Positions 20,995-47,463 of a stretch of 64,000 bases of DNA are shown here, one piece after another. Below the pieces are notes generated by a model that had not been told where the DNA came from, made no database searches, and saw nothing but the letters and a program-made list of their open reading frames with translations. Position 1 is the stretch's first letter, and each line of letters opens with the position of its first letter. This DNA is from Anthoceros angustus. Lineage: Eukaryota > Plantae > Anthocerotophyta. The stretch is from the NCBI GenBank assembly GCA_010909165.1, contig MU008159.1, positions 1,054,001 to 1,118,000 of the forward strand, given 5' to 3'. A program made the translations under genes and the position numbers.

Positions 20995-22010
20995 CAGCAT
21001 CGCGCATCGCCGAGCGCCATCGCCGCGCCGCTGGCGTCGCTGGCGATAACGGCACCGCCTCGCGTCGCTGGCGATAACTTTCGCTCGCTGGCATCGCCGC
21101 TGGCATCGCCGCTGGCGTCGCGCGATAACTTCGCCCTTCGCGCCGCTTCGCGAGCGCCGCTCGCCGAGCATCGCCGCTTCGCCGAGCGCCGCTGCGAGCG
21201 CCGCTCGCGAGCGCCGCTCGCGAGCGCCGCTTCGCCGAGCGCCGCTCGCCGAGCATCGCCGCGAAACGCCGCTCGCGAGCATCGCTCGCCGAGCATCGCT
21301 CGCCGAGCGCCGCCGCGAGCGCCGCTCGCGAGCGCCGCTCGCGAGCGCCGCTTCGCGAAACGCCGCTTCGCGAGCGCCGCTTCGCGAGCATCGCCGCCGA
21401 GCGCCGCCAGCATCGCTTCGCGAGCATCGCCGCGCCGCCGCGAGCGCCGCTTCGCGCCGCTCGCGAGCGCCGCTTCGCGAGCATCGCTGCGCCCGAGCGC
21501 CGCTTCGCGAAACGCCGCTTCGCGAGCGCCGCTTCGCCGAGCGCCAGTATCGCCGCCAGCATCGCTTCGCCGAGCGCCGCTCGCGAGCGCCGCTTCGCGA
21601 GCGCCGCCGCATCGCCGCTGCGAGCGCCGCCGCCGAGCGCCGCTCGCCGCCGCTTCGCCGAGCGCCGCTCGCGAGCATCGCTGCCGAGCGCCGCTCGCCG
21701 AGCGCCGCTGCGACGCCGCTCGCGAGCGCGCCGCCGAGCATCGCCGCGAGCATCGCTTCGCGCGCCGCTTCGCGAACGCCGCTGCGCCGAGCATCCATCG
21801 CCGCGCCGCTTCGCCGAGCGCCGCTGCGCCGAGCATCCATCGCCAGCATCGCCGCCGAGCATCGCTCGCCGAGCATCGCCGCGAGCGCCGCTCGCGAGCA
21901 TCGCCGCTGGCATCGCTCGCGCATCCATCGCTGGCATCGCCGCGCATCCATCGCGCGCATCGCCGCATCGCTGGCATCCATCGCCGCCGAGCATCCATCG
22001 CCAGCATCAC
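20995..22010. repeat. Very GC/CpG-rich degenerate minisatellite (gccgagcgccgctcgcgagc / gcatcgcc units)
   Basis: Low-complexity repeat; ORFs open in several frames on both strands because stop codons are absent. Confidence 0.9.
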
Positions 22011-22646
22011 ACTAAGCCCGGCCTGACCTATCTAGTGTACACACGAGATCATAGCTTGTAACAACGGAGGAGTAGCTCGCACATCGTGGCACAAACACAC
22101 TCTCCCCACGAGAACAACACGCAAATTCCTCACATCGCCGCTCTCGAATTGTGGCTTTGGCCTCCTCACAACGCTCTTGCATTGCATATCTAGAGGACAA
22201 GCTATGATCACTGTGTAACTCAATGGAAGGTCTATATATACTAGACCACGGCATCGGCATATTCCTAAGATATCCTATTGGCATCGGCATATGCGAAATA
22301 TCCTAAGAATACACTATACTATGCAAGGAATATGCCAAAGCATATTACTTGAGCTTATCCACTTAGCTATTGTATCCTAAGAATACACTATAATATGCAA
22401 GGAATATGCCAAAGCATATTACTTGAGCTTATCCACTTAGCTATTGCTAACCATGTTTAATTAACACTAATCAATGCTTAATTAACATAAGCACCCTAGA
22501 TTAATTAACACTAATGAATGCTTAATTAACATAAGCATCTTAGATTAATTAACACTAATTACTTACTTAAATATAAGTAATTGGATTAATTAACACTAAT
22601 CAAACACTAAACCCAAGTGCAGAGATTAGTATCACAGGGCATGACA
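22010..22646 (-). mobile_element. LTR-like terminal segment starting TGTCATG; homologous to 48572-49220 in the opposite orientation
   Basis: The reverse complement matches 48572-49220 over ~630 bp; homology starts sharply at TG; TATA-like ctagtatatatag. Confidence 0.7.
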
Positions 22647-24494: not shown

Positions 24495-24775
24495 CTATCC
24501 ATACCCTTCATTCACAATTCTCTTAGTGCCCACTGGGAATTTGCCCAGCAACAACAGCGGTGCTGTGCCGATTTGGTCCTTCGCAATCATTGCCACAAAG
24601 AACTGGTGGTGGTCAGATCTTGCTTTCTCCGTGCTGGTGCACTCAAAGAGGAAGTGGGTTTCATCATCTACCCGTCTTTGGTCGCATCTTCTGCACAAAC
24701 GCTGCTTTCTTGGCACATGCCCTCTGCCTTTGATGATTTGAAGGTTTGAGGACCTCAATCGGAATCGAGAAGAGA
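24495..24775 (-). mobile_element. LINE ORF2 C-terminal zinc-finger fragment
   Basis: RFRLRSSNLQIIKGRGHVPRKQRLCRRCDQRRVDDETHFLFEC matches the RFR...L.I..GR...PR..R.C..C....DE.HFLF.C motif of LINE ORF2; truncated at the palindrome boundary. Confidence 0.75.
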
Positions 24776-25185
24776 TGCGTTGGACCAGCCATTCAAATGT
24801 CATTCAGAAACATAGCTCAACGATTCCCTATCCGGTTCAGAGGTTGGACTCGAAGGTCTTCCTGTTGTGCTTGACACCAATTGAATGTATTACCGGCCAG
24901 GAATTTCAGCACTATACATCGAAGTGGTAATTTATCGTTGCAAAGGAGTCGATTCTGATGGTTCGTGTAGCGCACGACAAGACAACCCCAGCCGTCCCTG
25001 GCCGTCTGAGAGATACAAGCACCGTTTCCCACTTAACAAAAGAGCGCCGCAGGCGTGGGAAATGTCCATTGGCAATGGAAGTCCTTCTTGTGGGCACATA
25101 ACGCAAGAAGCACGACACCTTTCGAAGACCTCTTCATAGCAGGACAATGTTTGCCTCACTCGCCATCGGAGATATTCGAAAGTCA

Positions 25186-26199
25186 TTAGGAACTAGCTAT
25201 CCCCTTGCCACGATCAAACTTTCGTTCGAGTTTTTCCACCGCAGGCATTATCCTGCTCCCGTTTAATATTTCCATTGGATTCTAGTTAAGCTGCTCAGAC
25301 TGGACTCGCATATCAATCATTGTCTCTTGTGCATCGGGTCGAGAGTTTCGTCTTGTTCTTGACTTACCACAACGATGCAATGCACAACCTATGTGAAGGT
25401 CATGGAAGAAATAAGACCTTCTGATGAAACGTTTACCAAGCTTCTCTTATCGTTGAGATGAGATTCCTCAGACCTTACTTCCATCTCCAAATGACGTTGA
25501 GAGTCGGTCGCCTCTTGTATCAACTGCTCATGCCTTGTACGTACACTTTGTGGTTGCCATATCTGTGCAACTTTTGCACACGCAGGGTTCACGATGGCGA
25601 GACAAAACATCCATGAATTCAAAACATGTATCATACATTGGATCACACATTGTCACTCATTCGCTTGCTCGCAGTGTTACCTAAGCGTGTTTGAGATTGC
25701 CAAGCCTAAGGAGCAGGCGGACGGTTTATTGCTGACTTCAATTGATCTCGGAGGCATTGCGGTCATTCAAGACACCGCAATCTCACTCGAGCGACCAACC
25801 GCTATGCGACATTTTCATCGCATTTTCAGCGGTATACGTGAAGAAGGTGGACACAATTCGCGGGAAGAGCAGAAGTCAAATCCATTTCCATACCAAAACC
25901 CTATCCACCTCGGTTTTCCTCAACGATGGAGAACCGGAAACATGTCCACCTCATCCGGCAGCGGCCTTCCGATCTGCTGCCTCCTTCTCCGCTTTGGACA
26001 TCGATGAACTCCACTTGTCTCTGCACTGCAGCATCTTGGGAAGCAAACTCGTTTCCACGAAGCTCCCAAACAAAATCCAATTCTGAGGCGTGAAACTGCG
26101 GAGGCCGGACGCAAGCACAAAATTCACAGTGGCCCAAACTCGCCTATGAATCCCGGTCCCGAAGAACACAAGCCACGGCTCTTTGGGAGAGCGTCCATC
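25186..26199 (-). pseudogene. SKIP24-like F-box gene, mirrored copy with many indels
   Basis: Fragments SKAEKEAADRKAA and AKVAQIWQPQSVRTRHEQLIQ; collinear with 35872-36967; indels may be partly sequencing error. Confidence 0.75.
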
Positions 26200-26358
26200 C
26201 CGACTTCGTCAAATTGGGAGGCTCACAAGTCCCTCGGACCGTGCCTGGCCGAGTTCAGGGCCTGGACGAATGGTAGGTTAGTTACTTGTCCAAGTGTTCT
26301 TTTAGCTCCACCTATTTACCAAAATAATTACCTATACGTCACTCGGTGTCACGACCAG

Positions 26359-28070
26359 TGTCCAAATTACCTCCTTACTGTAATATATTTTCATTTATAT
26401 TTTGATAATTACATATTCTTATCTAATAAATTATGTTATAAATATAATATATAATTGGAAATAAATAATATCTATATAACTAGATTATAGTGAATATTTA
26501 AATATTAAATATTATATTAATTAAATAATTGATAATACAGCATGAAAATACATGTATTTTTACAAAGCCCAAAAGCAGGCTAGCTCTTGGGGTGAAAGCA
26601 ATGGTTAGGGATTGGTTGGAGTTATTGTGTATCACTCTTGCTAGAGGGTGCGTGGTTATCTTAACCACCATACAGTGTTGCTAGAGGTTGCGCCTTGAGA
26701 GCACTTGTTGCTTGGCCATTGAGTATGGCATTCATTGTGCGTTTCTACCACTTGAATGATTTATTTGCTGCTGGAATGACTTGCTTCGCTTCCTTGGTTT
26801 GAGTTGTTTGTGTGTTCAAAAGCTCTTTGTTTGCTGGAATATCGACTTCCTTCGCCGAGTTGTCTGCGTACTCAAAGATCCTTGTTTGATTGCTTTGTGT
26901 GTTCCAAAGATCCTTATTTGCCGTGTATTCACGACCGATGTCCAAATTACCTCCTTCTTGTAATATATTTTCATTTATATTTTGATAATTACATATTCTT
27001 ATCTAATAAATTATGTTATAAATATAATATATAATTGGAAATAAATAATATCTATATAACTAGATTATAGTGAATATTTAAATATTAAATATTATATTAA
27101 TTAAATAATTGATAATACAGCATGAAAATACATGTATTTTTACAAAGCCCAAAAGCAGGCTAGCTCTTGGGGTGAAAGCAATGGTTAGGGATTGGTTGGA
27201 GTTATTGTGTATCACTCTTGCTAGAGGGTGCGTGGTTATCTTAACCACCATACAGTGTTGCTAGAGGTTGCGCCTTGAGAGCACTTGTTGCTTGGCCATT
27301 GAGTATGGCATTCATTGTGCGTTTCTACCACTTGAATGATTTATTTGCTGCTGGAATGGTAGCTTCGTTTGAGTTGTTTGTGTGTTCAAAAGCTCTTTGT
27401 TTGCTGGAATATCGACTTCCTTCGCCGAGTTGTCTGCGTACTCAAAGATCCTTGTTTGATTGCTTTGTGTGTTCCAAAGATCCTTATTTGCCGTGTATTC
27501 ACGACCCGATGTCCAAATTACCTCCTTCTTGTAATATATTTTCATTTATATTTTGATAATTACATATTCTTATCTAATAAATTATGTTATAAATATAATA
27601 TATAATTGGAAATAAATAATATCTATATAACTAGATTATAGTGAATATTTAAATATTAAATATTATATTAATTAAATAATTGATAATACAGCATGAAAAT
27701 ACATGTATTTTTTACAAAGCCCAAAACGGGCTAGCTCTTGGGGTGAAAGCAATGGTTAGGGATTGGTTGGAGTTATTGTGTATCACTCTTGCTAGAGGGT
27801 GCGTAGTTATGCGCAACCACCATACGGTGTTGCTAGAGGTTGCGCCGACGCGCACAACTGGGCCATTGAGTATGGCATTCATTGTGCGTTTCTACCACTT
27901 GAATGATTTATTTGCTGCGCTGGAATGACTGGCTTCGTTTGAGTTGTTTGTGTGTTCAAAAGCTCTTTGTTTGCTGCCGGAATATCTGACTTCCTTCGCC
28001 GAGTTGTCTGCGTACTCCAAAGATCCTTGTTTGATTGCTTTGTGTGTTCCAAAGATCCTTATTTGCCGTG
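26359..28070 (+). repeat. ~575-bp tandem triplication, present in the left arm only
   Basis: Units start tgtccaaattacctcctt at ~26359, ~26939 and ~27510; the right arm has a single copy (~35150-35712). Confidence 0.85.
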
Positions 28071-29403
28071 TGTTACGAAGACCCCTGTTTCCAAAGGTCC
28101 TTGTTTGCCGGAATGTCTTCCTTGGCTTCCTTGGCTTCCTTGGCTTGATCGTGGTTTGTCTGTTCGAATCCTCCTTGTTTGCCGGAATGACTTGCTTCGC
28201 TTCCTTGGCTTGAATTTCTTTATTCAAAAGCTGCTTAATTGGTTGTCAGAATGACTTCCTTGGTTTGAGTTATCTATGTGTCCCAAAGATCCTTGTTGGT
28301 CGGAATGACTTCCTTCACCTAAAATGTCTGTGTCTTCCGAAGCATCTTTTCTACGGCAAAGATTCTCTCCGCCTGTGTTGGCCATGTGCTCAAAGCGTCT
28401 TTCTCTGCCCAGAAAGAGTTCAAAGCGTTTGTAGACCTCGACCCGGAAAGATTGCCTCCACTTTATTTCTCTAGCTGGTTGACTCCTTCCTCTTTTCTCT
28501 GAGCTCTAAGCATCGTTCTCTACTACAATGATTTTGTTTTTGTGCCAAATGACTCTCTGTATGATCTATCTGGAAGATTTGTCTTCAAGGTTTTTGGAAA
28601 AGCACTCATGAGAATCATTGTATCTCATCATTACATGTTACATTGTGTTATATTCTATAGAGCTAGGTTGTATAGAGATGATTGTATCGGAAGGAAGCAA
28701 TGAGGGATTGTAGATGGTGGTATGCTGTGAGTTGTGTATGTTAGCTTGGTACGTTGTCAGGTTATTCTTACTCTGTATAGATGAAGGGTTTTTGTGACCA
28801 AACCATCCGGAGGGAGAAGCAATTCCCATACAGACCTTGAAAATGAATGATTAAATGTAGTTTCCATGCTGCCCATGACAGTTAACAGCCTTGTCTCCAT
28901 GGAAATTTGCAGGTGGGGGAAAGGGCAGCAGCAGCAGCAACAGCTGCATCCCAAGGTGCGCAAATGGCGCACAACATAACCCAGGAGCAGCAGAGGCAGC
29001 TACCACAGAACAGGTACCCCAGCTAGGGGAATTGATGAGAATCACGTTGCCTGAAGTGTGAGAACTGCCGTCGGGTTGGGTGGAAGGGTTATGTATTGAA
29101 AGCTGCTGGTGTACCGTGATTGCCCGTTTGCTATGTGTTGCCATCTCAAGTTTTGCTCGCCTTAAGCTCAAGCTGATCGAGCTCATGGTGTGTGCGATGC
29201 CGATAGCAGAAACCAGGATGTCAGGGGATGTTTATATAATAAATATTTCCCCGATGAGGATGTGAGGAGAGAGATAATCTCGAGATTCCGTTGCACCGAG
29301 GTTCCTGCGTCAATCGAGCTGTAAGTGCTATTTCCTTGTCGAATTCGTGAGTGGGTGATTCACAGACTGCAGAAGCCTGTATTGGGGTTGTGGAGGGCTA
29401 ACA

Positions 29404-30534
29404 ATGTGGAGATCAGCCTTGCAATTAATGTGCAGGCCGCGGGTGCTGGAATGCCTTGAATGGAGACCCGCCGATGAACTCGATCAAACAATGCTGTCGA
29501 AGATCGTGCTGTACTCCGACGACAACCGTCGATTATACAAGTGGGTCCAGTTCTGCGACTTCCTTCGGGAGACCAACAGTGTGGCTGTGGTACGCCTTGG
29601 AGATGGTTTGTTGGCGTACCTCAAACCTGTACGTGTGGAACCGACGATGTTGCGACTCTCTTGTGAGCCGGTGCCGGACGAATTGTGGGCATTCTTCAGG
29701 GATCCGGGCACGGTTGCTGCTGCCGCTCCAAGGGGCGACGCCGGGGCGAGTGTTGCAATTGGCCCCCAGCCGCCTCAGCCTCCCAGAGGGCCCCCACGGC
29801 AGACAGGACCGCCACAGGCAGCTGGGCGTGGAGGACCCGGGGTTGGGCGCCCACGGAGGGATCCGTCTCTTCCCCCACGACCGCCGCAGGCAGCTGGGCG
29901 TGGCGGACCCGGGGTTGGGCGCCCACGGAGGGATCCAACTCTTCCCCCACGACCGCCACAGGCAGCTGGGCGTGGCGGACCCGGGGTTGGGCGCCCACGG
30001 AGGGATCCGACTCTTCCCCCACGACCGCCACAGGCAGCTGAGCGTGGCGGACCCGGGGTTGGGCGCCCACGGAGGGATCCGACTCGGCCCCCACGCCCGC
30101 CACAGGCAGCTGGGCGTGGCGGACCCGGGGTTGGGCGCCCACGGAGGGATCCGAGTCTTCCCCCACGACCGCCACAGGCAGCTGGGCGTGGCGGACCCGG
30201 GGTTGGGCGCCCACGGAGGGATCCGACTCTTCCCCCACGCCCGCCCGCGAGGCCTACAGAGACATGGCCACAGCAGGAGCCGGCGCTGGGGCCGGCGGCG
30301 CGCTTGTGGTCTGCACAACCAGGACGGTATATATATTGGCCCTACCATCTGCCTGATGAGGCTCCACAGCAGGTGGGAGCGCTACCCCAACAGCAAGACC
30401 GGAGGCCGGATCCACCGCTCGGCGCTCAGCAGGTTGTTTCACTAACGGATGTTGCAGCTAGCAGCAGCGAGGCTACCCTGGCGGTTGTGAACGATCGTCT
30501 TCCAGGAGCACATACTCTGGTGCTGTACCTGTAG
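29404..30534 (+). CDS. Orphan 376-aa protein: N-terminal SPOC-like globular segment plus 6 x 24-aa Pro/Arg/Gly (RGG) repeats
   Basis: ORF intact in both arms; WVQFCDFLRETNSVAVVRLGDGLLAYLKP resembles SPOC C-terminal strands; 72-bp in-frame repeat PPQAAGRGGPGVGRPRRDPTLPPR; diverged paralog at 39380-39560 keeps the motif. Confidence 0.5.
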   Translation: MWRSALQLMCRPRVLECLEWRPADELDQTMLSKIVLYSDDNRRLYKWVQFCDFLRETNSVAVVRLGDGLLAYLKPVRVEPTMLRLSCEPVPDELWAFFRDPGTVAAAAPRGDAGASVAIGPQPPQPPRGPPRQTGPPQAAGRGGPGVGRPRRDPSLPPRPPQAAGRGGPGVGRPRRDPTLPPRPPQAAGRGGPGVGRPRRDPTLPPRPPQAAERGGPGVGRPRRDPTRPPRPPQAAGRGGPGVGRPRRDPSLPPRPPQAAGRGGPGVGRPRRDPTLPPRPPARPTETWPQQEPALGPAARLWSAQPGRYIYWPYHLPDEAPQQVGALPQQQDRRPDPPLGAQQVVSLTDVAASSSEATLAVVNDRLPGAHTLVLYL

Positions 30535-31235
30535 AGTCGCCAACGTGTGAACTCGTTTGAAGTTCATGACGTTTTGCTCCTATAAGTGAGCACGGATGAC
30601 GAAAGACCCTGGCTTAAGCTTGTTGACTTTGAAGTTATGCTTATTGGGCTATGTATCCCTTCCAGGCCACCTTCTCAGCAGACGAGAGCCTTGAACTTCA
30701 CATCTGAAGCTTAAGCACAGAAACTATCGAAGGTAGCTCGCCCCATGTCCATGCTATCGTCGGCATGAGTGCAGCAGTTCTCCAATCTGGTGAAGAGTGT
30801 GTCTGTGAGAGGTACTCCCAGCAGGTCACAATTCACTAATCATCAACAGACTATGGAACACAGCCTGTGCCGTGTTGCGTCACCTGGAGCCCAAGCCCCT
30901 AGCCTCCATCCGGTCTTATACTCGGCTTTCAACTCATGAGGAAAGTTAGGCGCCTCCCGCCTGAGGACGACTGTTTAGAAGTAGCTACGGACCAGGTCAT
31001 CACCATTAACAGTGAGTATATAAATAAGAATGGACAAACCACGGGTGCCGTCCTGGGCGATACCCTTCCAATTGAAACAGTAGAGCGCCTGAGGAAGGTA
31101 GAAATATGTCTGTTTGCAATGGAAGTTCTTCTTGTGCGCACGGAATGCGAGAAGCATGAACTGACACCACGAACAGACTGTCCTCCAGCTCACAAGACCC
31201 GTTACACACTGCCACTGGAGGCATTTGAAAGTCAT

Positions 31236-31830
31236 TAAGAACTAGCTAAATCCATCAAGCTTTCGTCCCAAAGAGTTTTCCACCTGCAAAGGCATTATCC
31301 CTGCTGAATTCCCTTCAGTATTTCCATTGGATTCCTGCTAACCGGCTCCAGACGCTGGACTAACATGTCAATCAGCTGTCTCTTGTGGATCTGATGAATT
31401 CTGATCTGATGAGAGTTTTGTACCGTTCTACAGCTTACCACAACCAGCACGCAATATTTGCACAAACTCTGTAAAGCGCATGGAAGGAAACAGACGCTGC
31501 AGCAGGAAACCTTTACGTACCAAGCAATTCTCTCATACGTTGAGATGAGATTCCTTCAGACCCTTACTTCCATCTCTAGTGAGAGCCAGCGTCAGCAGCT
31601 TGCTGTATCAACCATGTTCATGCCTGGTACCCACAAGTTGTGTTTGCCATATCTGCATTGCAACTTTTGCACATATGCCTGGACGGGTTACAAGCGCAAG
31701 AAACAAGCCACACATACACTTTCTTCTTTCAGCTTCAATTGATCTCTGCTGGAGGCTGTTGGAGTCATGCACAAGACCTGCAATCTCACTCTCAACAGCC
31801 AAAACTGCCAGCACATGCGACACTACTTGC
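31236..31830 (-). pseudogene. Diverged SKIP24-like 3' exon fragments
   Basis: HVLAVLAVESEIAGLVHDSNSLQQRSIEAE and AKVAMQIWQTQLVGTRHE, homologous to exons 2-4 of 35872-36967. Confidence 0.75.
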
Positions 31831-31911
31831 ATCATAAGTGTGAACGTACGTTGCCATCCGAAGTTTTGCTCGCCTAGCCCCAAGCTTTAGCTCATGGTCT
31901 GTGCAATTATG

Positions 31912-32050
31912 CCGATAGCAGATACCAGGTCTCCACTCGTACACGGGAACTTCTGTGCTATGCGGACCCACTTCTATGCTATGTACAGGAGTGGGTCCGC
32001 ATAGCACAGAAGTTCCCGTGTACGAGTGGAGACCTGGTATCTTCTATCGG
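31912..32050. ncRNA. 61-bp stem / 17-nt loop hairpin with one mismatch; candidate miRNA or hpRNA precursor
   Basis: 31912-31972 is the reverse complement of 31990-32050 except at one position. The structure is certain; expression is not. Confidence 0.45.
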
Positions 32051-32902
32051 ATTGGAAGTTCCCGTGTCTCCAGACTAGCGTCTGGAGCCAATGTTTCCAA
32101 TGGAAGACCGGTTAGCAGGAATCCAAAGGAAATACTGAAGGGAATTCAGCAGGGATAATGCCTTTGCAGGTGGAAAACCCTTTGGGACGAAAGCTTGATC
32201 AGGACAAGGATTTAGCTAGTTCTTAATGACTTTCAAATGCCTCCAGTGGCAGTGTGTAACGGGTCTTGTGACTGGAGGACAGTCTGTTCGTGGTGTCAGT
32301 TCATGCTTCTCGCATTCCGTGCGCACAAGCATATTTCTACCTTCCTCAGGCGCTCTCTGTTTTAGTGGGAAGTGTATCGCCCAGGACGGCACGCGTGGTT
32401 TGTCCATCCTTATTTATATACTCACTATTAATGGTGATGACCTGGTCCGTAGCTACTTCTAAACAGTCGTCCTCAGGCGGGAGGCGCCTAACTTTCCTCA
32501 TGAGTTGAAAGCCGAGTATAAGACCGGATGGAAGCTAGGGGCTTGGACTCCAGGTGACGCAACACGGCACAGGCTGTGTTCCATAGTCTGTTGATGATTA
32601 GTGAATTGTGAACTGCTGGGAGTACCTCTCACAGACACACTCTTCCCCAGATTGGAGAACTGCTGCACTCATGCCGACGATAGCATGGACATGGGGCGAG
32701 CTACCTTCGATAGTTTCTGTGCTTAAGCTTCAGATGTGAAGTTCAAGGCTCTCGTCTGCTGAGAAGGTGGCCAGGAAGGGATACATAGCCCAATAAGCAT
32801 AACTTCAAAGTCAACAAGCTTAACCCAGTTTCTTTCATCATCCGTGCTCACTTATAGGAGCAAAACGTCATGAACTTCAAACGAGTTCACACGTTGGCGA
32901 CT

Positions 32903-33817
32903 CTACAGGTACCGCACCAGAGTATGCGCTCCTGGAAGACGATCGTTCACAACCGCCAGGGTAGCCTCGCTGCTGCTAGCTGCAACATCAGTTAGTGAAA
33001 CAACCTGCTGAGCGCCGAGCGGTGGATCCGGCCTCCGGTCTTGCTGTTGGGGTAGCGCTCCCGCCTGCTGTGGAGCCTCATCAGGCAGGTGGTAGGGCCA
33101 ATATATATACCGTCCTGGTTGTGCAGACCACAAGCGCGCCGCCGGCCCCAGCCCCGGCGCCTGCTGTGGCCATGTCTCTATAGGCCTCGCGGGCGGGCGT
33201 GGGGGAAGAGTCGGATCCCTCCGTGGGCGCCCAACCCCGGGTCCGCCACGCCCAGCTGCCTGTGGTGGTCGTGGGGGAAGACTCGGATCCCTCCGTGGGC
33301 GCCCAACCCCGGGTCCGCCACGCCCAGCTGCCTGTGGCGGGCGTGGGGGCAGAGTCGGATCCCTCCGTGGGCGCCCAACCCCGGGTCCTCCACGCCCAGC
33401 TGCCTGTGGCGGTCCTGCCTGCCGTGGGGGCCCTCTGGGAGGCTGAGGCGGCTGGTGGCCAATTGCAACACTGGCCCCGGCGTCGCCCCTTGGAGCGGCA
33501 GCAGCAACCGTGCCCGGATCCCTGAAGAATGCCCACAATTCGTCCGGCACCGGCTCACAGGAGAGTCGCAACATCGTCGGTTCCACACGTACAGGTTTGA
33601 GGTACGCCAACAAAACATCTCCAAGGCGTACCACAGCCACACTGTTGGTCTCCCGAAGGAAGTCACAGAACTGGACCCACTTGTATAATCGACGGTTGTC
33701 GTCGGAGTACAGCACGATCTTCGACAGCATTGTTTGATCGAGTTCATCGGCGGGTCTCCATTCAAGGCATTCCAGCACCCGCGGCCTGCACATTAATTGC
33801 AAGGCCGATCTCCACAT
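32903..33817 (-). CDS. Mirror copy of the SPOC-like/RGG-repeat protein, with 3 repeats
   Basis: Intact ORF, near-identical to 29404-30534 apart from 3 fewer 72-bp units and a few substitutions. Confidence 0.5.
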   Translation of the reverse strand: MWRSALQLMCRPRVLECLEWRPADELDQTMLSKIVLYSDDNRRLYKWVQFCDFLRETNSVAVVRLGDVLLAYLKPVRVEPTMLRLSCEPVPDELWAFFRDPGTVAAAAPRGDAGASVAIGHQPPQPPRGPPRQAGPPQAAGRGGPGVGRPRRDPTLPPRPPQAAGRGGPGVGRPRRDPSLPPRPPQAAGRGGPGVGRPRRDPTLPPRPPARPIETWPQQAPGLGPAARLWSAQPGRYIYWPYHLPDEAPQQAGALPQQQDRRPDPPLGAQQVVSLTDVAASSSEATLAVVNDRLPGAHTLVRYL

Positions 33818-35871
33818 TGTTAGCCCCTCCACAACCCCAATACAGGCTTCTGCAGTCTGTGAATCACCCACTCACGAATTCGACAAGGAAATAGCACTTA
33901 CAGCTCGATTGACGCAGGAACCTCGGTGCAACGGAATCTCGAGATTATCTCTCTCCTCACATCCTCATCGGGGAAATATTTATTATATAAACATCCCCTG
34001 ACATATTCCTGGTTTCTGCTATCGGCATCGCACACACCATGAGCTCGATCAGCTTGAGCTTAAGGCGAGCAAAACTTGAGATGGCAACACATAGCAAACG
34101 GGCAATCACGGTACACCAGCAGCTTTCAATACATAACCCTTCCACCCAACCCGACGGCAATTCTCAACCCAACCCTTCAGGCAACGTGATTCTCATAAAT
34201 TCCCCTAGCTGGGGTACCTGTTCTGTGGTAGCTGCCTCTGCTGCTCCTGGTTTATGTTGTGCGCCATTTGCGCACCTTGGGATGCAGCTGTTGCTGCTGC
34301 TGCTGCCCTTTCCCCCACCTGCAAATTTCCATGGAGACAAGGCTGTTAACTGTCATGGGCAGCGTGGAACCTACATTTAATCATTCATTTTCAAGGTCTC
34401 TATGGGAATTGCTTCTCCCTCTGGATGGTTTGGTCACAAAAACCCTTCATCTATACAGAGTAAGAATAACCTGACAACGTACCAAGCTAACATACACAAC
34501 TCACAGCATACTACCATCTACAATCCCTCATTGCTTCCTTCAGATACATCATCTCTATACAACCTAGCTCTATAGAATATAACACAATGTAACATGTAAT
34601 GATGAGATACAATGATTCTCGTGAGTGCTTTTCCAAAAACCTTGAAGACAAGTTTTCCAGGTAGATCATACAGAGAGTCATTCGGCACACAAAAAAAATC
34701 ATTGTAGTAGAGAAAGATGCTTAGAGCTCAGAGAAAAGAGGAAGGAGTCAACCAGCTAGAGAAATGAAGTGGAGGCAATCTTTCCGGGTAGAGGTCTAGA
34801 AACGCTTTGAACTCTTTCTGGGCAGAGAAAGACGCTTTGAGCACATGGCCAACACAGGTGGAGAAAATCTTTGCCGTAGAAAAGATGCTTCGGAAGACAA
34901 GACACAGACAACTCAGGCGAAGGAAGTCATTCCAACCAACAAGGATCTTTGGGACACATAGATAACTCAAACCAAAGAAGTCATTCTGACAACCAATTAA
35001 GCAGCTTTTGAATAAAGAAATTCAAGCCAAGTAAGCGAAGCAAGTCATTCCGGCAAACAAGGAGGATTCGAACAGACAAACCACGATCGAGCCAAGGAAG
35101 CCAAGGAAGACATTCCGGCAAACAAGGACCTTTGGAAACATGGATCTTCGCAACACACGACAAATAAGGATCTTTGGAACACACAGAGCAATCAAACAAG
35201 GAACTTTGGAGTACGCAGATAACTCGGGCGAAGGAAGTCAGATATTCCCCGGCAGCAAACAAAGAGCTTTCGAACACACAAACAACTCGAACGAAGGCAG
35301 TCATTCCGGCGCAGCAAATAAATCATTCAAGTGATAGAAACGCACAATGGATGCCATACACAATGGCCCAGTTGTGCGCGTCACCGCAGCCTTTGGCAAC
35401 ACCGTGTGGTGGTTGCGCATAACTACGCACCCTCTAGCAAGAGTGATACACAATAACTCCAACCAATCCCTAACCATTGCTTTCACCCCAAGAGCCAGCC
35501 CGTTTTGGGCTTTGTAAAAAATCCATATCTTTTCATGCTATATTATCAATTATTTAATTGATATAATATTAAAATATTTAAAATTTATTATAATCTAGTT
35601 ATATAGATACTATTTATTTCCAATTATATATTATATTTATAACATAATATATTAATCTGTAATTATCAAAATATAAATGAAAATATATACAGTAAGGAGG
35701 TAATTTGGACACTGGTCGTGACACCGAGTGACGTGTAGGTAATTGTTTTGGTAAATAGGTGGAGCTAACAGAACACTTGGACAAGTAGCGAACCTACCAT
35801 TCGTCCAGGCCCTGAACTCGGCCAGGGACGGTCCGAGGGACTTGTGAGCCTGCCAATTTGACGAAGTCGGG

Positions 35872-36967
35872 ATGGACGCTCTCCCCGAAGAGCTGTGGCT
35901 TCAGGTTCTTCAGACTGGGATTCATAGGAAGAGTTTGGGCCACCAGGAATTGTGCGTGCTTGCGTCCGTCTCCCGCAGGTTTCGACGCCTCTGTAAATTG
36001 GATTCTGTTTGGGAGCTTCTGTGGAAACGAGAGTTTGCTTCCCGAGATGCTGCAGGTGCAGAGACAAGTGGAGTTCGTCGTATGTCCAAAGCGGAGAAGG
36101 AGGCAGCAGACTGGAAGGCCGCGTACCAGATCAGGTGGACATGTTTCCGGTTCTCCATCGTTGAGGAAAACTGAGCAGGGATAGGGTTTTGGTGTGGAAA
36201 CGGGATCTGACTTCCCTGCTCTTCCTGCGAATTGTGACCACCTTCTTCACAGATACCAGTCAGTGAAAAATGCGATGAAAATGTCGCATATGCGGGCAGT
36301 GTTGGCTGTTCAGAGTGAGATTGCAGGTCTTCAGAATGACTGCAACAGCCTCCAGAGATCAATTGAAGCTGAAAGCAATAAACTGTCTGCCCTGTTCCTT
36401 AGGCTTGGCAATCTCAAACACGCTAGGTAACACCTGCGGGCAAGCGATTGAGTGACAATGTGTAGAGTATCCAACAGGTATGATACATCTTTGAATTTAT
36501 GGATGTTTTGTCTCGCTACTGTGAACCCCGTGCAGGCAGGCAAAAGTTGCGCTGCAGATATGGCAACCACAAAGTGTACGTACAAGGCATGAGCAGTTGA
36601 TACAGCAGCAGCCTGCTGACACTGACTCTCAACGTCATTTGCTGGAGATGGAAGTAAGGGTCTGCAGGAATCTCATCTCAACGTATAAGAGAAGCTTGGT
36701 AAACGTTTCCTGTTGTAATGTCTTATTTCTTCCATGGCCTTCACAGAGGTTGTGCATTGCATGCTGGTTGTGGTAAGCTGAAGAACGGTACGAAACTCTC
36801 TGACTCAGATGCACAAGAGACAGTTGATTGACATGCGAGTCCAGCGTCTGGAGCAGCTTAGCTGGAATCCAATGGAAATATTAAACGGGAGCAGAGATAA
36901 TGCCTCTGCAGGTGGGAAAACTCTGGAACGAAAGTTTGATCAGGGCAAGCAGATAGCTAGTTCCTAA
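35872..36967 (+). CDS. SKIP24: F-box protein SKIP24-like, 4 exons: 35872-36134, 36253-36426, 36536-36698, 36809-36967
   Basis: F-box MDALPEELWLQVL...LCVLASVSRRFRRLCKLDSVW; RQAKVALQIWQPQSVRTRHEQLIQ...LEMEVRVC matches SKIP24 RQASVALNVWQPEVVRGRQKQ; GT-AG introns join in frame. Confidence 0.85.
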
Positions 36968-37759
36968 TGACTTTCGAATACCTCCAGTGGCAGAGTGAGG
37001 CAAACATTGTCCTGTTACAGTAAGAGGTCTTCTGAGCAGGTCAGTTCGTGCTTCTTGCATTATGTGCCCACAAGGAGGACTTCCATTGCCAATGGACATT
37101 TCCCACGTTCTGTGCGGCGCTCTTTTTAAGTGGGAAACGGTGCTTGTATCTTTCAGGACGGCCAGTGTGGACGGCTGGGGTTGTCTTGTCGTGCTACTCT
37201 GCCGAACTACTGTAACTGACTCCTTCGCAACGATAATTACCACTTCGATGTATAGTGCTGAAATTCCTGGCCGGTAATACATTCAATTGGTGTCAAGCAC
37301 AGCAGGAAGACCTTCGAGTCCTACCTCTGAACCGGATAGGGAATCGTTGAGCTATGTTTCTGAATGACACTTGAATGGCTGGTCCAACGCATTTCTTATG
37401 AGTTCTCTGTGATAGTGTGGCAAATCGATCCAACACTGGACTTCAAGTTGATGAGAGCATGAAGATGCAAGTGCCACAGGCTGTGATTGAAGGGGCTAGC
37501 AGCTGAAATCTAGAGATGTATGGACACATGCTGTCGACAGTCAGAAGTTCATCCTGCCAGTGGGAAGCACACGCTTTACACTCGTCCAACTAGTCGAGTC
37601 CCATACAGAAGTAGCATTCGCCTGAGAACATGCCAAGAACACTACATTGAAAGCACAAGGACAATTCCAGCATGAGGAAACAAAGTCTGAAATTCCTCTC
37701 CCTGAAAACACATTGGAGGGGCTGCACCAACACAGACGTGCGGTTGGGCATGGGGCATT

Positions 37760-38000
37760 CGCAGTCTTGCCCAGCAGCTACAGCGAAAAAGGACTTCTAA
37801 GTTAAAACAGCTGTACCACCGATGTACCACCAAACTATTCACACGTACCAAGAAGCTCAGATTTCCTTACCGACTGAAGTCATATTTTTGTCCGATCATG
37901 CATCAGGCTTTGTGAGTTGCGATTTGGTGTCGCCAGTAGATGCTGGTCCTGGTCACTGTCGCTTTCCACTATTTCTTCTTCACCCTCACCAAAGTCTCCT
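37760..38000 (-). pseudogene. Duplicated last exon and 3' UTR of the DeSI gene
   Basis: DFGEGEEEIVESDSDQDQHLLATPNRNSQSLMHDRTKI*, matching ~40900-41125. Confidence 0.8.
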
Positions 38001-39379
38001 TGGCTGCTATGAGGGCTACTTCTAGTTTTCCACTTTTGCGGCAGCCTCTTTTGCTTGCTACATCCATTCTTCTCTCGTATCAATCGTTTTCAGCAACTTA
38101 GCAGCCAATCCATCTACTTGCTCCCTGTGGTTCTCAACCTCTGTTTGGATCTCGCTGGCCTCCCGGACCAAAGCCTTCATTCTCCCTTCCAACTCCAACA
38201 TCTTTACCTTAGCAGCCCTTATATTTTCTTGGCTCCTAGCCTCTCTCTCTCTCTCGTGCTGCTGCCTCCCGGACCTTGCTGGTCCTCAACTCCCCCAGGT
38301 CTTCCACCAAGGTACTAGCCATCCTTGTGGCTTCCTTCACATCCAGCCGGCTCAAACGCCCACATAGCTGGAGCACGTCTCCTAACATACCCAGTTCAAG
38401 CCTCATGGCCTGTGCTCCTACCGGTCCATAACTCTCGGGGACCACATCCCCTACTATGGTCCTCTAGTACCCTTTGGAGCCAACCTAGCCCCCTTTGGAG
38501 CCAACCTTCTCCTAGGCTCTCTCCTAGGCACCGCCTTAGCACGACCTCCAGCACTTATCTCAACAATGGGGCCCCTTGGTCCCATTGTGGCCAAATTTCC
38601 TCCAATGTAACGAGCTCCACTACACTTCTTTTTACTCCTTCTCCCCAAGTAGGTTCCTCCCCTACTGGCGTAGGGACCTCTATCCTAGCCTCTTCTTCTT
38701 GGTGCTCTGTCTGCACACCTTCCTCCGTAGGTCCCTAACTGTGGACGGACTTTCGCTGATGGACCAGCCGGGCGCACACTAATCCCGTGTCGTGTAGTAT
38801 GGGTTCGAGGCCAAGGAATGGGTTCGCTCTTTTTGCTTACTATTCACCAACTCCGGATTCATAATTGATCCGGGCTGCTACCGTAACCAACACTGTATCA
38901 CCGATTCCACTTGGTTACGAGGGTGGGCGGCTCACCTTTCTTGCGATCCACTAGTCCGGCCACTATCGCTGCCCAACGACGCCGCCGGACCGCGACGCGC
39001 GCGCAACGTGACCCCCGACCAGGCGCTACTATGGTAAGTTGAACTTGGAGTGGGTGATTCATGTTGCATACGCTTGTATTGCGGGTGTGGTTTTCTACAT
39101 AATTTGGTATGCTAGGTGCATGTGCAAGCCGCTGGTGCTGGATTGCCATACACACCGGTTGCTAACTCGATGAGCGCACATGTTGAGGTGGTTTCTGCAT
39201 AAGGACGATAACCATCAATGGGTGGCATCAATTAGCTTGATCTTTGGGCTGTGGTCAGTATCCCAGATGGTGATGGTTCTTTGTCACTGTTTTTGAAGCT
39301 TGTGGTATCAACGGTGTTTCTGAAACCTACGGTTTAAAGAGACTCGCAACACTGTTGACACCACATGTGTTTGAGATAC

Positions 39380-39560
39380 GCAAGGAGACATCTGCCATGC
39401 GGACCACTGCTACAAGGTCACAGAAATGCCACCCATTCAAATAGTCGACGGTTGTCGTCCGAATGCAGCACGAACCTGAACATGTGCATTTCATCCAGTT
39501 CAGCAATCATTCTCCATGCGAGGCAATCCATCACCAGCGTGCTCTGCACATTGCGTGTGG
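39380..39560 (-). pseudogene. Diverged fragment of the SPOC-like ORF
   Basis: DCLAWRMIAELDEMHMFRFVLHSDDNRRLFEWVAF...LLAYLK vs ECLEWRPADELDQTMLSKIVLYSDDNRRLYKWVQF...LLAYLK. Confidence 0.7.
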
Positions 39561-40059
39561 CATATAAGATTATAAGGCCACAACCGGGCAATACAATTAC
39601 TCGAATGGATCGCCAATCAGATGGCACTTACAGTTGGATTGAGATGGGCACTTGGGACCCACGTACTTTGGTAATTACCCGTCTTTCGCATCCTTACCTG
39701 GGAAGTTCGTATACAGAAGTTGCCGCGTACGAGTGGAGACTTGGTGTCTGCTATGGGCATTGCACACACCATGAGCTTGAGCTTGAGCTTGAGCTTGAGC
39801 TTGAGCTTGAGCTTGAGGCCAGGGCAGCAAAACTTGAGATGGCAACACATAAAACGGGAAAACTATGCAGCGGCTTCAGTATTTTACCCCTCCAGCTGCA
39901 GGCACCTGGATTGGATGATCCTTCCTGTCTTGAAAGTGCTTTTCAAAAATCGGCAGTAGTAGGAGAAGAATTATCCAACAACAACAACAGGTATGATACA
40001 TGTTTTATGTTCATGGATGTTTTTTCTTGCCACCATGTTCTATACCTTGTTCGCAGTTC

Positions 40060-40232
40060 TTCACCCAGAAGTTGCACTGCAGATATGGCAACCACAAAAT
40101 TCTGCACACCTGCAAGCATGAGCCGTTGATACAGCTGCCAGCTGACACGTCTGAGTCTGAATGCCAGTTGCTGGAGATGGAAGTAGAGGATTGCAGGAAT
40201 ATTCTCATCTCAAAGTTTGCGAGAAACTTGGT
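40060..40232 (+). pseudogene. SKIP24-like exon 3 fragment
   Basis: VALQIWQPQ...HEPLIQLPADTSESECQLLEMEVEDCRN. Confidence 0.7.
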
Positions 40233-41009
40233 AAAGGTTTTCTTCTGTAACATTGCATGCTGATTCAGATCTATCCTTGCTCATACCTCCTACTCGTCCA
40301 ACTAGTCTAGTCCCATACAGAAGTAGCACTCGCCTGAGAACATGCCAAGAACACTGCATTGGAAGCACAAGAACACTACCAGCATGAGGAAACAAAGTCT
40401 GAAATTCCTCCACCTGAAAATACATTGGAAGGGCTGCACCAACACAGACGTGCGGTTGGGCGCGTGGTGCATGCTGACGGATGTTCGAGTGGATGTCCCG
40501 TCCCGCAACCGAAGGACGATCCTTCTCCGTGATAACGTCACGTTAGTGGCCTTGGAGTATCGATTTACAGGACGTGCACTGCGCTAGGCGCGTCAGGTAC
40601 TACACAAGGGGTACATTAAGAAGGGGAACAAACGAAAGAATGCAGGACGGTGTTTGAGTGGTGAGGAATTGGAATTGGATTTAAAATACGACAGCTACTG
40701 GATCACCTTTGGCAAGATGATCCAGCTCATAACTGCAGATTTCGAACGAGAGAAAGGCAGATGTGGCAACCACACACACTCGTAGATGCTGTGTGACAGG
40801 GTACTCTGGATGACTGCTGGAAAGAGATCGCCAAAAGGCCCGTAGAAAAGAGATCACGCTGTCAACTTCCAGACGAGCGCTAGTGACGACGGCATCCCTT
40901 CACAGTCTTGCCCAGCAGCTACAGCGAAAAAGGACTTATGAGTTAAAACAGCTGTACCACCAAACGATTCACAAGTAGCGAGAAGCTCAGATTTCCTTAC
41001 CGACTGAAG

Positions 41010-42410
41010 TCATATTTTTGTCCGATCATGCAACAGGCTTTGTGAGTCGCCATTTGGTGTCGCCAGTAGACGCTGGTCCTGGTCACTGTCGCTCTCCACT
41101 ATTTCTTTTTCACCCTCACCAAAGTCTACAGGGCCCTCAGATGCAGAGTTGATCAACCCAAGGAAACCACACATTCAAAGTTAGATGCACAAAAAAAAAA
41201 GAATTTCTAAGGCCGTGCTGGTAAAACAAAATACGTAGGCCAAACGAAAGAAGCAAAGCCTGATAAACACCCAGATATGTGTCACAACAAGCAGACGGGC
41301 TGGCAATAGAAGCCTCACCCTTGCTGGGGAAAGGAAGAACAGATTTGGACAAACATCAGACAAAACGCCTAACAGGACCTACGGGAGTGTAGAATTGGAC
41401 GCCTGCACACCTTCATATCCCTGAAACTCAGGAGTATGTCTGACCGCATTGACCTGAAGGCTTTCTGGCAATAAACAATTGCAAAACCATCCTGTCACAT
41501 CACATACCATGGAAGAAATATTAGCCACTCTCTGCAGAGGATGCATGACATTGAACCAGCCGATGGGTGGCCAGTATCTGCAGACGTTTGTATAGCAATC
41601 CAGCGGTGTCAACCAACCAACCAGAAACAAAAATCAAATGCATCCGAGACAGCTAGCATGCTCGTGTCCACAGGCGTTTGGGAACATCTAATACTGTACC
41701 ATACCTATTCGTGCAAGACGATTTACCCATCCTGGTATGGGATTGCCAGTCAGGCGAGTGGAGATATCATCTGAGAAATGGTTGCAGTTCTTTGCGATGA
41801 GATGGTAAGTATCGCCATTGTAATCTGCAGCACACTGTCCTACAAATGTCCTGAACTCAGAGGGATCTAGAGTAGTAGTTCCCAGGAGAATAGTTTTCCT
41901 GTAGGTGAATCCTGGGCACCCCCGAGGCTCTACCTCAAAAACACCACTTGATGGAAACTCATGCGCACCAAATGCATACTCTACGCCATGAGCTGCATCC
42001 GAGTGACAGCCAAGGTGAAAGTCAAAAGAGTGAGTTCAAGGAGACAGCAACACTTTATGCTGGTCACTGTCCATCCTTGGCAAGACAAAAATCATCAGGG
42101 ACGTAACCCCAACTGGATGGCATACACTCCACTTATCAGGCAGCTCTAACCGAAGGCATCCCTACCAAACCAACCAAGATAAGACTCTCTTCAAGACGAG
42201 AGGCGTACAAGCAACAGAAACAGATTTAGAAGAGTAGTAACAACAAGATAAGCACATAGGGGACGCACCTTCCACACCCGAATGGAAGATCCCAAGACCA
42301 AACCAATAGAAGTAGCCGTTTAACGGAGTCAGATCATAAACATTGAGGTAGATTGGGACCCATCTGGTCTGATCGGATCCACATGTGGGCACACTTGTCC
42401 TCAGACTCAT
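41010..42410 (-). CDS. DeSI-like / PPPDE (C97) peptidase, 4 exons: 42410-42269, 41992-41705, 41491-41411, 41125-41010
   Basis: YLNVYDLTP..GLGIFHSGVEAHGVEYAFGAH; catalytic YHLIAKNCNHF; IPGWVNRLARIG; CNCLLPESL; canonical splice sites in frame. Confidence 0.93.
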
Positions 42411-47013: not shown

Positions 47014-47300
47014 AGTATTCTCTGTTGTTGGGTGGCTTATTTTGTGGCTTTTCGGAATTTGGGTCCCGTGACGCCTGCGGCTGAAGCACGCTGCCGCCAC
47101 ACAACACGCACGGCCACTGAAAGCAGTATGAATCAATTGGTGAATGTTTTTCCTTGGGGGTACGTGGCTGAGGGGAGGCTCGGAAGGCGCGGAGGAGTCA
47201 TCTCTCCTATGTAATCGAGTCATTGCTAATAAGGTGATCATGTTTTTATCATAAGGGTTTCAATGTTCCAAGGTCCTAGCATGGAATGTCTTACGAATCT

Positions 47301-47463
47301 AGTACGGGAGTGGGCCGGGTCAGTGTTCCGGGTGAGGTAGGTAATATTCAATCCTTGGTTCAATTGATCACAACTTTTTTAGTACGGGAGTGGGCCGGGT
47401 TAGTGTTCCGGGTGAGGTAGGTAATATTCAATCCTTGGTTCAATTGATCACAACTTTTTTAGT
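47301..47463 (+). repeat. 80-bp direct tandem duplication
   Basis: agtacgggagtgggccggg...caactttttt occurs twice. Confidence 0.85.

Follow-up and report, generated by a model that had tools for sequence, protein, structure and literature searches.

A long gene-bearing palindrome raises the question of whether it serves as a silencing locus, in which read-through transcription would yield hairpin RNA against its own gene family, or whether it is a gene duplication with no such function. The palindrome considered here lies in a 64,000-nucleotide stretch of DNA (the window), and its structure, gene content, junction anatomy, error signature and stem 21-mer content were read directly from the sequence. 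It is probably a genuine, young duplication of a gene pair by fold-back or template switching, with a working right F-box gene, a left copy probably silenced by its position, and no need of a silencing function.

Structure of the inverted duplication

Self-BLAST and a repeat search of the window identified an inverted duplication of 12.6 kb (24770-37397) consisting of two arms around a spacer. Self-comparison agreed with the original prediction of arms of ~6.6 and ~5.3 kb separated by ~710 bp.

24770-31350: left arm, 6581 bp, inverted match to 37397-32101
32101-37397: right arm, 5297 bp, inverted match to the left arm
31351-32100: spacer, 750 bp, or 713 bp with the 11-nt homology beyond a 20-nt insertion counted
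29807-30245 (left) and 33192-33414 (right): 72-bp tandem repeat, 6.1 and 3.1 copies, respectively
26349-28078 (left) and 35152-35721 (right): ~575-bp unit, three tandem copies and one copy, respectively

Identity between the arms was 87% in the outer part and 95% in the inner part. Each arm contains one SKIP24-like F-box gene facing outward and one orphan open reading frame (ORF) facing inward, an arrangement that had been proposed earlier and that the Pfam F-box-like match and the ORF positions bear out. The reported repeat number of six versus three units was likewise recovered for the 72-bp repeat. The ~575-bp unit, the first half of which is AT-rich, also differs in copy number between the arms (three versus one), a difference missing from the earlier description and added here as a correction. 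The left two-thirds of the spacer continue a central SKIP24 fragment, while hairpins occupy its right end.

The palindrome is a genuine structure in which two distinct copies are present. An assembly artefact, arising from a fold-back chimeric long read or from a wrong join of dispersed paralogues at a hairpin-rich junction, is very unlikely. Such an origin would suit a noisy assembly in which gap openings outnumber mismatches in several repeat pairs of the window, and the sole novel inner junction does lie in hairpin-rich sequence. However, neither the ordinary inner-arm substitutions (1-5%) nor the copy-number differences (216 bp and ~1150 bp) between the arms would be expected if one locus had been read as a fold-back. 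Furthermore, the 713-750 bp spacer and the flanks on both sides are unique, and right-arm homology stops exactly at the junction, as a true fold-back event predicts. The earlier argument that arm differences speak against a pure fold-back read artefact is thus sustained by inner-arm substitutions without motif bias, by the copy numbers and by the spacer.

A foldback or long-TIR transposon with captured gene fragments would account for the long inverted termini and the internal AT-rich repeated unit, yet is vanishingly improbable. A target-site duplication was looked for at the outer ends (24770 and 37397) and was absent, no transposase domain was present in the ORFs tested, and the end sequences occur nowhere else in the window. 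A whole host gene of several exons, syntenic with a relative, also lies in the arms.

SKIP24-like F-box genes and orphan ORFs

The genes and gene fragments of the palindrome and its surroundings are as follows.

35872-36967, + strand: right SKIP24-like F-box gene, four homology-defined exon blocks, apparently intact
~35872-36142, 36253-36426, 36536-36704 and 36784-36967, + strand: exon blocks of the right gene, defined by homology, splice sites approximate
36965-36967, + strand: stop codon of the right SKIP24-like gene
25185-26198, - strand: left SKIP24-like copy, every exon frameshifted as assembled, breaks with a CAG/CTG-centred error signature
31082-31850, - strand: central, older partial SKIP24 copy, equivalents of exons 2-4, 77% identical to the right gene
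32101-32370, + strand: truncated right-arm copy of the 3' part of the central fragment
29404-30534, + strand: left inward orphan ORF, 376 aa
32903-33817, - strand: right inward orphan ORF, 304 aa from the ATG, three repeats
39120-40240, pieces on both strands: degraded third orphan/SKIP24 unit
39120-39216 (+ strand) and 39424-39552 (- strand): orphan N-terminal pieces of the third unit
39742-39858: upstream piece of the third unit
39991-40240, + strand: SKIP24 exon-3 pieces of the third unit

Exon 1 of the right gene (35872-36171, + strand; query 35872-36174) matched the Pfam F-box-like family PF12937 (6.2e-8) and PF00646 (6.3e-6). Relatives of this gene include Physcomitrium proteins named 'F-box protein SKIP24' by NCBI; matches to one of these (P0010) and its relatives reached E ~1e-13 for exon 1 and 1e-10 to 1e-12 for exon 3, and the homology extends past the F-box into the coiled-coil region. 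All four homology blocks are open in the right copy and candidate GT/AG sites are present, as judged from the unjoined exons in the sequence, and the right copy is likely to be the working F-box gene. In a relative's contig (L001) SKIP24 is followed by the same PPR gene as here, and because this gene order is shared the locus represents an ordinary genic neighbourhood. The extra SKIP24 3' fragments first noticed near the centre correspond to the central copy, which is indeed antisense to the left inward ORF and runs unbroken across the border between left arm and spacer.

The two inward ORFs are arranged tail to tail. The left one comprises ~110 N-terminal codons of gene-like composition, six 24-aa Pro/Gly/Arg-rich repeats and a C-terminal tail. 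The ORF is open in both arms, which differ by 8 synonymous and 9 non-synonymous changes and otherwise only by an in-frame change in repeat number. Database searches for relatives and known domains of the orphan ORF found none. A SPOC or Ku-like beta-barrel domain was considered for its N-terminus; feature matches to SPOC clusters (0.89) fell under the threshold of that method, and Pfam gave no match even at E 10. Foldseek and phmmer returned Ku matches no better than E 0.5-1.4, and the AF2 model had a pLDDT of 55.

Arm divergence and the CAG/CTG error signature

The arms had been described as differing by clean substitutions. This holds for 27499-31350 only, while the outer left arm is indel-dense. 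The inner 3.9 kb differ by the ordinary substitutions given above, with a ratio of gap openings to mismatches of ~0.2 and no CAG/CTG bias. Divergence along this inner part is uneven (~4.7% in 27499-28689, 1.1% in 28690-29729 and 2.7% in 29730-31219), which points to selection or gene conversion; a purely neutral account requires neither.

In the outer 2.6 kb of the left arm ~130 small indels cluster at CAG/CTG, most of them deletions in the left arm. This noisy block (24920-27498) is dense in 1-3 nt deletions found only in the left arm and is depleted in CAG/CTG. Across 24770-26926 there were 113 gap openings against 139 mismatches, nearly all of the gaps being 1-3 nt deletions in the left arm. 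CAG/CTG sites of the right copy were disrupted in the left copy in 81% of cases, compared to 33% for all trinucleotides (odds ratio 6.9, p 2e-29). Typically the middle base is lost or miscalled; C-to-T is not the usual change. Comparison with the right copy, the central fragment and the relative's contig places these changes in the left copy alone. The same hotspot recurs in other repeats of the window. Observed/expected CAG/CTG was 0.2-0.75 over 1-23 kb and 25-28 kb, and 1.2-2.25 over 28-47 kb.

Consensus errors in nanopore data have been traced to unlearned 5mC motifs (PMC6591954), and we read the left-arm indels as modification-linked errors of the nanopore type. Since the indels are read in this way, the left F-box copy may not be truly broken. 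The case resembles the nanopore errors at Dcm CCWGG sites in bacteria, where errors also cluster at C-W-G motifs that carry 5mC and persist after polishing (PMC6591954); here, in contrast, the organism is a eukaryote and the motif would reflect the CHG (CAG/CTG) methylation of plants. The left arm's outer part would then lie at the edge of a repeat-rich, CAG/CTG-depleted domain, putatively CHG-methylated chromatin with an unpolished long-read consensus. From such a domain it would follow that the left F-box copy is probably silenced by position and that most of its numerous frameshifts come from sequencing noise. In practice, the signature cautions that such noise may account for many of the 'pseudogenes' found in repeats of the assembly, and it may also act as an approximate marker of CHG-methylated domains.

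Hairpin potential of the palindrome

The original prediction held that read-through from either inward ORF would give a multi-kb stem whose siRNAs could target SKIP24, the orphan gene and the paralogous pieces at 39-40 kb. Geometrically, a long stem could form: in an inward transcript running from start codon to start codon, 1675 of 1715 aligned bases would pair (98%), giving a ~1.7-kb stem with a 216-nt bulge, a loop of 713-750 nt and perfectly paired runs of up to 140 bp. This predicted stem would be a good Dicer substrate if ever transcribed. However, it holds the orphan ORF and its 3' flank only, the F-box genes lying outside it, upstream of the inward ORFs and with transcription directed outward.

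A self-contained module silencing the SKIP24 F-box family and the 39-40 kb pieces is highly improbable. In its favour, ~270 bp of SKIP24-derived sequence lie at each inner arm end (31082-31350 and 32101-32370), and ~35 stem 21-mers match the SKIP24 gene with two mismatches or fewer. This is the only SKIP24-derived sequence in the stem, and it comes from the fragment that is 77% identical to the gene. Among the 1927 and 1697 stem 21-mers (~3600), none matched the intact SKIP24 gene perfectly, only 5 and 2, respectively, matched with at most one mismatch, and none perfectly matched the pieces at 39.3-40.4 kb. The gene bodies lie outside any stem made from an inward promoter, and to include them would need a 12.6-kb transcript begun outside the palindrome, of which the sequence gives no sign. 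Because the stem 21-mers lack a perfect match to SKIP24 or to the 39-40 kb pieces, silencing of the F-box family is unsupported by the sequence. Such complementarity exists for the orphan ORF copies themselves only, and the dsRNA potential built into the palindrome would concern these convergent ORFs alone.

A hairpin against the orphan gene itself is possible. By analogy, the closest known case is the tail-to-tail inverted gene repeat PAI1-PAI4 of Arabidopsis (Ws strain), in which transcripts mostly stop at the repeat centre, the smaller share that continues past it yielding fold-back dsRNA and small RNAs of 21-24 nt (PMC3203196). Minority read-through here would likewise produce a ~1.7-kb duplex, from which Dicer siRNAs would dampen or methylate both orphan copies. 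Such a locus, although unlikely, would be consistent with the tail-to-tail ORFs, the near-complete pairing with its long perfect runs, the PAI1-PAI4 precedent and the maintenance of the open orphan frame in both arms. Against it, the orphan ORF has no relatives or known domain in the searches made, and a search of Rfam matched no family. Poly(A)-signal-like hexamers at 31019 (+ strand) and 32418 (- strand), one ~485 bp past each ORF stop, inside the arm and before the spacer, give a weak hint against a read-through transcript across both arms. Furthermore, the CAG/CTG content of the stem is normal, unlike that of the putatively methylated domains; the error and depletion footprint, an indirect proxy for methylation, covers 24.9-27.5 kb and not the would-be stem, where successful polishing could mask it.

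PAI1-PAI4 is alike in being a natural tail-to-tail inverted duplication of whole genes, in which read-through past the 3' end of the first gene gives fold-back dsRNA (PMC3203196). It differs in that the repeated gene itself forms the stem and unlinked paralogues are nearly identical targets, whereas the stem here would hold the orphan ORF instead of the F-box gene, and the spacer is 0.7 kb. Read-through transcripts, small RNAs and methylation have all been shown for PAI1-PAI4, while the present locus is known from its sequence. Young MIRNA and hpRNA loci are said, after the 2004 work of Allen et al., to be born by inverted duplication of target genes, the maize Tpd1 hairpin reportedly being an example of an hpRNA locus from inverted duplication. 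The likeness is an inverted genic duplication that supplies a long, nearly perfect foldback. Such loci are defined by mapped small RNAs and target complementarity, whereas here complementarity to the F-box gene was tested and not found.

If small RNAs are produced, the locus would be an early-diverging land-plant counterpart of PAI1-PAI4 and a snapshot of the birth of a hairpin locus. A combined reading, in which the tail-to-tail palindrome of the hornwort lineage is a hairpin-RNA self-regulator of a lineage-specific gene and the older F-box copy, on the heterochromatic side, is CHG-methylated in a manner readable from motif-specific assembly errors, is quite unlikely. If true, it would describe a PAI-like silencing locus in a bryophyte, with a chromatin state inferable from assembly noise. 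A silencing function is not needed to explain the palindrome, and we infer that there is none. On present evidence the locus is a well-preserved fold-back gene duplication in a birth-and-death F-box cluster, which is ordinary and unsurprising.

Central junction and origin

The novel junction of the preferred fold-back duplication would lie at ~32.05-32.10 kb, beside a strong hairpin.

31912-32050: spacer hairpin, near-perfect stem of ~64 bp, self-inverted match of 93%, adjoining the right-arm junction
32068-32087: small 8+8 palindrome at the novel junction, where left-arm sequence resumes after a 20-nt insertion

The fold of 31880-32110 had a predicted energy of -160 kcal/mol (z -19.7). The 8+8 palindrome together with the 20-nt insertion suggests a template switch. 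Across 31350|31351 the central SKIP24 fragment stays collinear with the gene, whereas its right-arm copy is truncated and ends at the junction. Just outside the right arm, 37580-37997 shows direct-repeat homology to sequence beside the third copy, a possible sign that the right arm still adjoins its pre-duplication flank, which would conflict with the preferred polarity.

The palindrome is probably an inverted segmental duplication of recent origin in the genome of a hornwort-like land plant. A divergent gene pair, the SKIP24-like F-box gene and the lineage-specific ORF, would have been copied as a unit and set tail to tail when repair or replication folded back or switched template, probably with the left arm as template and the right arm as its copy. 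The duplication is probably one of several rounds of duplication in a local birth-and-death cluster that would also include the central fragment (31.1-31.85 kb) and the decayed third unit (39.1-40.2 kb). Fold-back and template-switch inverted duplications with a spacer are replication- or repair-based rearrangements. The palindrome resembles this class in its asymmetric spacer, in the microhomology or small palindrome and short insertion at a single novel junction, in the truncation of one arm at that junction and in the absence of a target-site duplication; it differs in that the mechanism is deduced from junction anatomy and the left arm is only probably the template. The palindrome is useful for the study of how fold-back rearrangements form.

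Palindrome architecture

Self-comparison of the window yielded a pair of inverted arms whose similarity is real and far above chance. The arm-to-arm match consists of three collinear inverted blocks.

Left arm: 24770-31350, inverted relative to the right arm
Right arm: 32101-37397, inverted relative to the left arm
Block 1: 24770-26929 versus 37397-35152, inverted, 87% identity
Block 2: 27499-30029 versus 35721-33192, inverted, 95.4% identity
Block 3: 30023-31350 versus 33414-32101, inverted, 95.2% identity

The spacer measures 750 bp, or 713 bp when an 11-nt homology past a 20-nt insertion is counted, in agreement with the gene-bearing inverted arms and spacer of about 710 bp of the original prediction. 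As was also predicted, each arm carries a SKIP24-like F-box gene pointing outward and an orphan ORF pointing inward. The arms differ in length because of a 72-bp repeat (6.1 copies in the left arm and 3.1 in the right, consistent with the 6 versus 3 units first reported), a unit of ~575 bp present as three tandem copies in the left arm versus one in the right, and small deletions totaling ~120 bp in the left arm. The arms had further been described as differing by clean substitutions. This holds from 27499 inward and in the first 150 bp of the left arm, with 2-5% mismatches and few indels, but not for 24770-26926, where the alignment contains 113 gap openings versus 139 mismatches. The window sequence contains no Ns. 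An assembly artefact, the reading that substitutions and repeat number had been proposed to argue against, is quite improbable, and the locus is probably a real, ordinary fold-back duplication without a demonstrated silencing role.

SKIP24-like F-box genes and genomic neighborhood

The right SKIP24 gene contains four open exon blocks at approximate positions, based upon relatives including P0001, a SKIP24 relative from a related plant.

~35872-36142 (+): right SKIP24 gene, first exon block
36253-36426 (+): second exon block
36536-36704 (+): third exon block
36784-36967 (+): fourth exon block
~25185-26198 (-): left SKIP24 copy, frameshifted throughout as assembled

Exon 1 of the right gene (35872-36171, +) encodes the F-box (Pfam F-box-like, 6e-8). 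Used as the only SKIP24 query in an exhaustive HMMER search, this exon detected 65 relatives, including Physcomitrium 'F-box protein SKIP24' and unnamed Calypogeia and Ceratopteris proteins, and the other exon blocks were placed by aligning the relatives found. The nearest relatives were from a moss, a liverwort, and a fern, which indicates that the window derives from a non-seed land plant. P0001 was the closest relative of the right gene (60% identity), and its gene is carried on the 9.9-kb Logan contig L001 (1-9854, SRR33208241). On L001, a PPR orthologue lies 3.7 kb downstream of SKIP24 on the same strand and matches the PPR gene of the window at 44.2-47.0 kb; this order of SKIP24 and PPR, common to L001 and the window, points to a neighborhood of ordinary genic DNA. 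Further genes in the window, besides this PPR gene, include a mitochondrial carrier and a malectin-like kinase. The PPR gene is broken into several called ORFs on L001, and likewise in the window.

Additional copies of the duplicated genes

Extra SKIP24 fragments were predicted near the palindrome center and were recovered there, and a third, decayed unit was found outside the right arm.

31082-31850 (-): central SKIP24 fragment, a partial copy with 77% identity to the right gene
32101-32370 (right arm): truncated mirror image of the 3' part of the central fragment
39.1-40.2 kb: third unit, decayed
39120-39216: third unit, orphan N-terminal piece, inverted
39424-39552: third unit, orphan N-terminal piece, 54% amino-acid identity, E 1e-10
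39742-39858: third unit, conserved upstream piece
39991-40240: third unit, SKIP24 exon-3 pieces

The central fragment crosses the border between left arm and spacer unbroken. With this fragment and the third unit as further copies, the locus is a birth-and-death cluster. The orphan N-terminal pieces at 39120-39216 and 39447-39551 form an older decayed inverted pair (74% identity, ~230 bp apart), which implies at least two rounds of inverted duplication for the orphan N-terminal sequence. Direct repeats of 90-93.5% identity (37580-37997 versus 40292-40461 and 40899-41127) adjoin the outer end of the right arm and the end of the third SKIP24 remnant, and represent either a small dispersed element or what remains of an earlier tandem duplication that took in the entire unit.

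Origin of the palindrome

The sole clearly novel junction is at ~32.05-32.10 kb, where left-arm sequence restarts past the 20-nt insertion, within an 8+8 palindrome (32068-32087). A hairpin lies beside it.

31912-32050: near-perfect 64-bp hairpin, predicted dG -160 kcal/mol for 31880-32110, z -19.7

Transcription of this hairpin would yield a Dicer-size substrate in its own right. Short repeated motifs at the junction of spacer and right arm (31912-32100) resemble templated insertions. The left side has the whole central fragment and the right side a shortened version. In the simplest reading, a fold-back or template-switch event would have produced the right arm as a copy of the left. The assignment of the left arm as template and the right arm as copy, which is suggested by the sequence, is tentative, since 37580-37997, a segment flanking the right arm on its outer side, recurs next to the third copy. 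Synteny with L001 had offered the right copy as ancestral; this reading is weakened because the central fragment favors the left arm as template and the third copy agrees better than the right copy with the spacing on L001. A transposon origin of the palindrome is very unlikely, given that its outer ends carry no target-site duplication, no transposase was found in the ORFs tested against Pfam, and the ends have no further copy within the window.

Predicted hairpin RNA and silencing potential

Read-through from either inward ORF is predicted to produce a stem in which 29404-31361 pairs with 33817-32075 (1675 pairs, 40 mismatches, a 216-nt bulge, and perfect runs up to 140 bp), which would be a competent Dicer substrate. 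According to the original prediction, the resulting RNA could act against SKIP24, the orphan gene, and the paralogous pieces at 39-40 kb. The F-box genes lie outside the stem, upstream of the inward ORFs and transcribed outward, and the sole SKIP24-related part of the stem is a 270-bp fragment, 77% identical to the gene. None of the stem 21-mers perfectly matched the intact SKIP24 gene, while 5 (left) and 2 (right) matched it with at most one mismatch. The F-box claim thus fails at the level of sequence, and silencing of the F-box family by the palindrome is very improbable. Nor did any stem 21-mer perfectly match the pieces at 39.3-40.4 kb, leaving these pieces without support as a target. 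A hairpin locus directed at the orphan gene would draw on the same stem and is rather unlikely. One poly(A)-signal-like hexamer is present ~485 bp past each orphan stop codon, within the arm, and no Rfam family was detected over 22-42 kb at gathering thresholds.

The closest known case is the tail-to-tail PAI1-PAI4 inverted gene repeat of Arabidopsis Ws, with which the palindrome shares its architecture. PAI1-PAI4 transcripts mostly end at the center, while a minority read through. These few fold back into dsRNA and yield scarce sRNAs of 21-24 nt, by which unlinked PAI genes are kept methylated (PMC3203196). In contrast, the palindrome displays none of the checkable functional features of PAI1-PAI4 and lacks the target complementarity of PAI-type loci with regard to its F-box genes. 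The locus thus adds one more example to a known class of rearrangement and is not a demonstrated silencing module.

Inward orphan ORFs

29404-30534 (+): left inward ORF, 376 aa
32903-33817 (-): right inward ORF, 304 aa

Word-index protein searches with the whole orphan ORF, residues 1-110, or the N-terminus alone returned no relatives, and no Pfam domain was detected at E 1 or E 10. By exact look-up, both orphan ORFs, SKIP24 exon 1, and the nearby carrier gene were all absent from the collection. Hints of a SPOC/Ku-like barrel in the N-terminus (Atlas features, model, Foldseek, phmmer) were all sub-threshold. A SPOC assignment is a lead only, since the single-sequence AlphaFold model reached a pLDDT of only 55, Foldseek gave no match to PDB structures at E <= 0.001, and phmmer hits to PDB sequences were at chance level.

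The GC1 > GC2 < GC3 pattern of the real genes in the window was found only in the first ~110 orphan codons, and is missing from the repeat part and tail. Between the two copies there are 8 synonymous and 9 non-synonymous differences and an in-frame change in repeat number, which is weakly suggestive of constraint. Divergence between the arms was lowest (~1.1%) at 28690-29729, comprising the ORF start and its upstream region, compared to ~4.7% at 27499-28689 and 2.7% at 29730-31219; selection or gene conversion could account for this minimum. Both arms also conserve an ORF of 111-113 aa (28851-29186, -; 34039-34380, +), flanked by the orphan ORF and the F-box gene and without a known Pfam domain. 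It falls where the arms have diverged least and is partly preserved in the third unit (39742-39858), and the region may be promoter or 5'-UTR instead of coding.

Probable CAG/CTG error footprint

Deletions in the left outer arm were densest at 24920-26165, and nearly all gaps were losses of 1-3 nt in the left arm. The right copy retains the deleted bases, as do the central fragment and the outgroup L001, so that only the left copy is affected. CAG/CTG trinucleotides of the right copy were disrupted in the left at 67 of 83 sites (81%), versus 33% for all trinucleotides, and changed bases were 6.9 times likelier inside CAG/CTG (Fisher p 2e-29), typically with the middle base lost or miscalled. 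Deamination was rejected as the cause, as the expected TAG or CAA change occurred at only 4 of the 67 disrupted sites. Further repeat pairs in the window share this hotspot (39% versus 6.9% overall), but the inner arms do not (11% versus 10% and 7% versus 8%), and no footprint was found over the stem region. Gap openings exceeded mismatches in many repeat pairs of the window, a ratio that is non-biological.

Observed/expected values for CAG/CTG were 0.2-0.75 over 1-23 kb and 25-28 kb (0.2-0.8 for 1-23000, 24920-27498, and 47000-53000 taken together), and 1.2-2.25 over the genic DNA at 28-47 kb, while the composition-matched control GAC/GTC was flat along the window. The main differences between repeat copies in the depleted domains are short insertions or deletions located at CAG/CTG, CCG, and CG sites. 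Indels common to the tandem units c1 and c2 were rejected as proof of real mutations; they are located at CTG/CCG/CG motifs, and systematic errors recur in identical contexts.

CAG/CTG is the preferred CHG methylation context in plants. Nanopore consensus errors accumulate at 5mC motifs unlearned by the basecaller, e.g. Dcm CCWGG (PMC6591954). Given both, we infer that the left outer arm forms the margin of a CHG-methylated domain rich in repeats and that its consensus was never polished, since short reads from it would align preferentially to the clean right copy; the 'pseudogene' state of the left F-box copy is then unproven. The footprint resembles modification-linked consensus error and may be a marker of CHG-methylated chromatin, a by-product worth keeping, and frameshifts in CAG/CTG-depleted domains should not be taken as pseudogenes. 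A degenerate tandem array is present at 20841-22026 (59% GC, copies 76-81% identical, open in several frames on both strands). The adjoining sequence at 21996-22646 recurs in inverted orientation at 48572-49225 (92.6%), and this pair is probably a transposable element.
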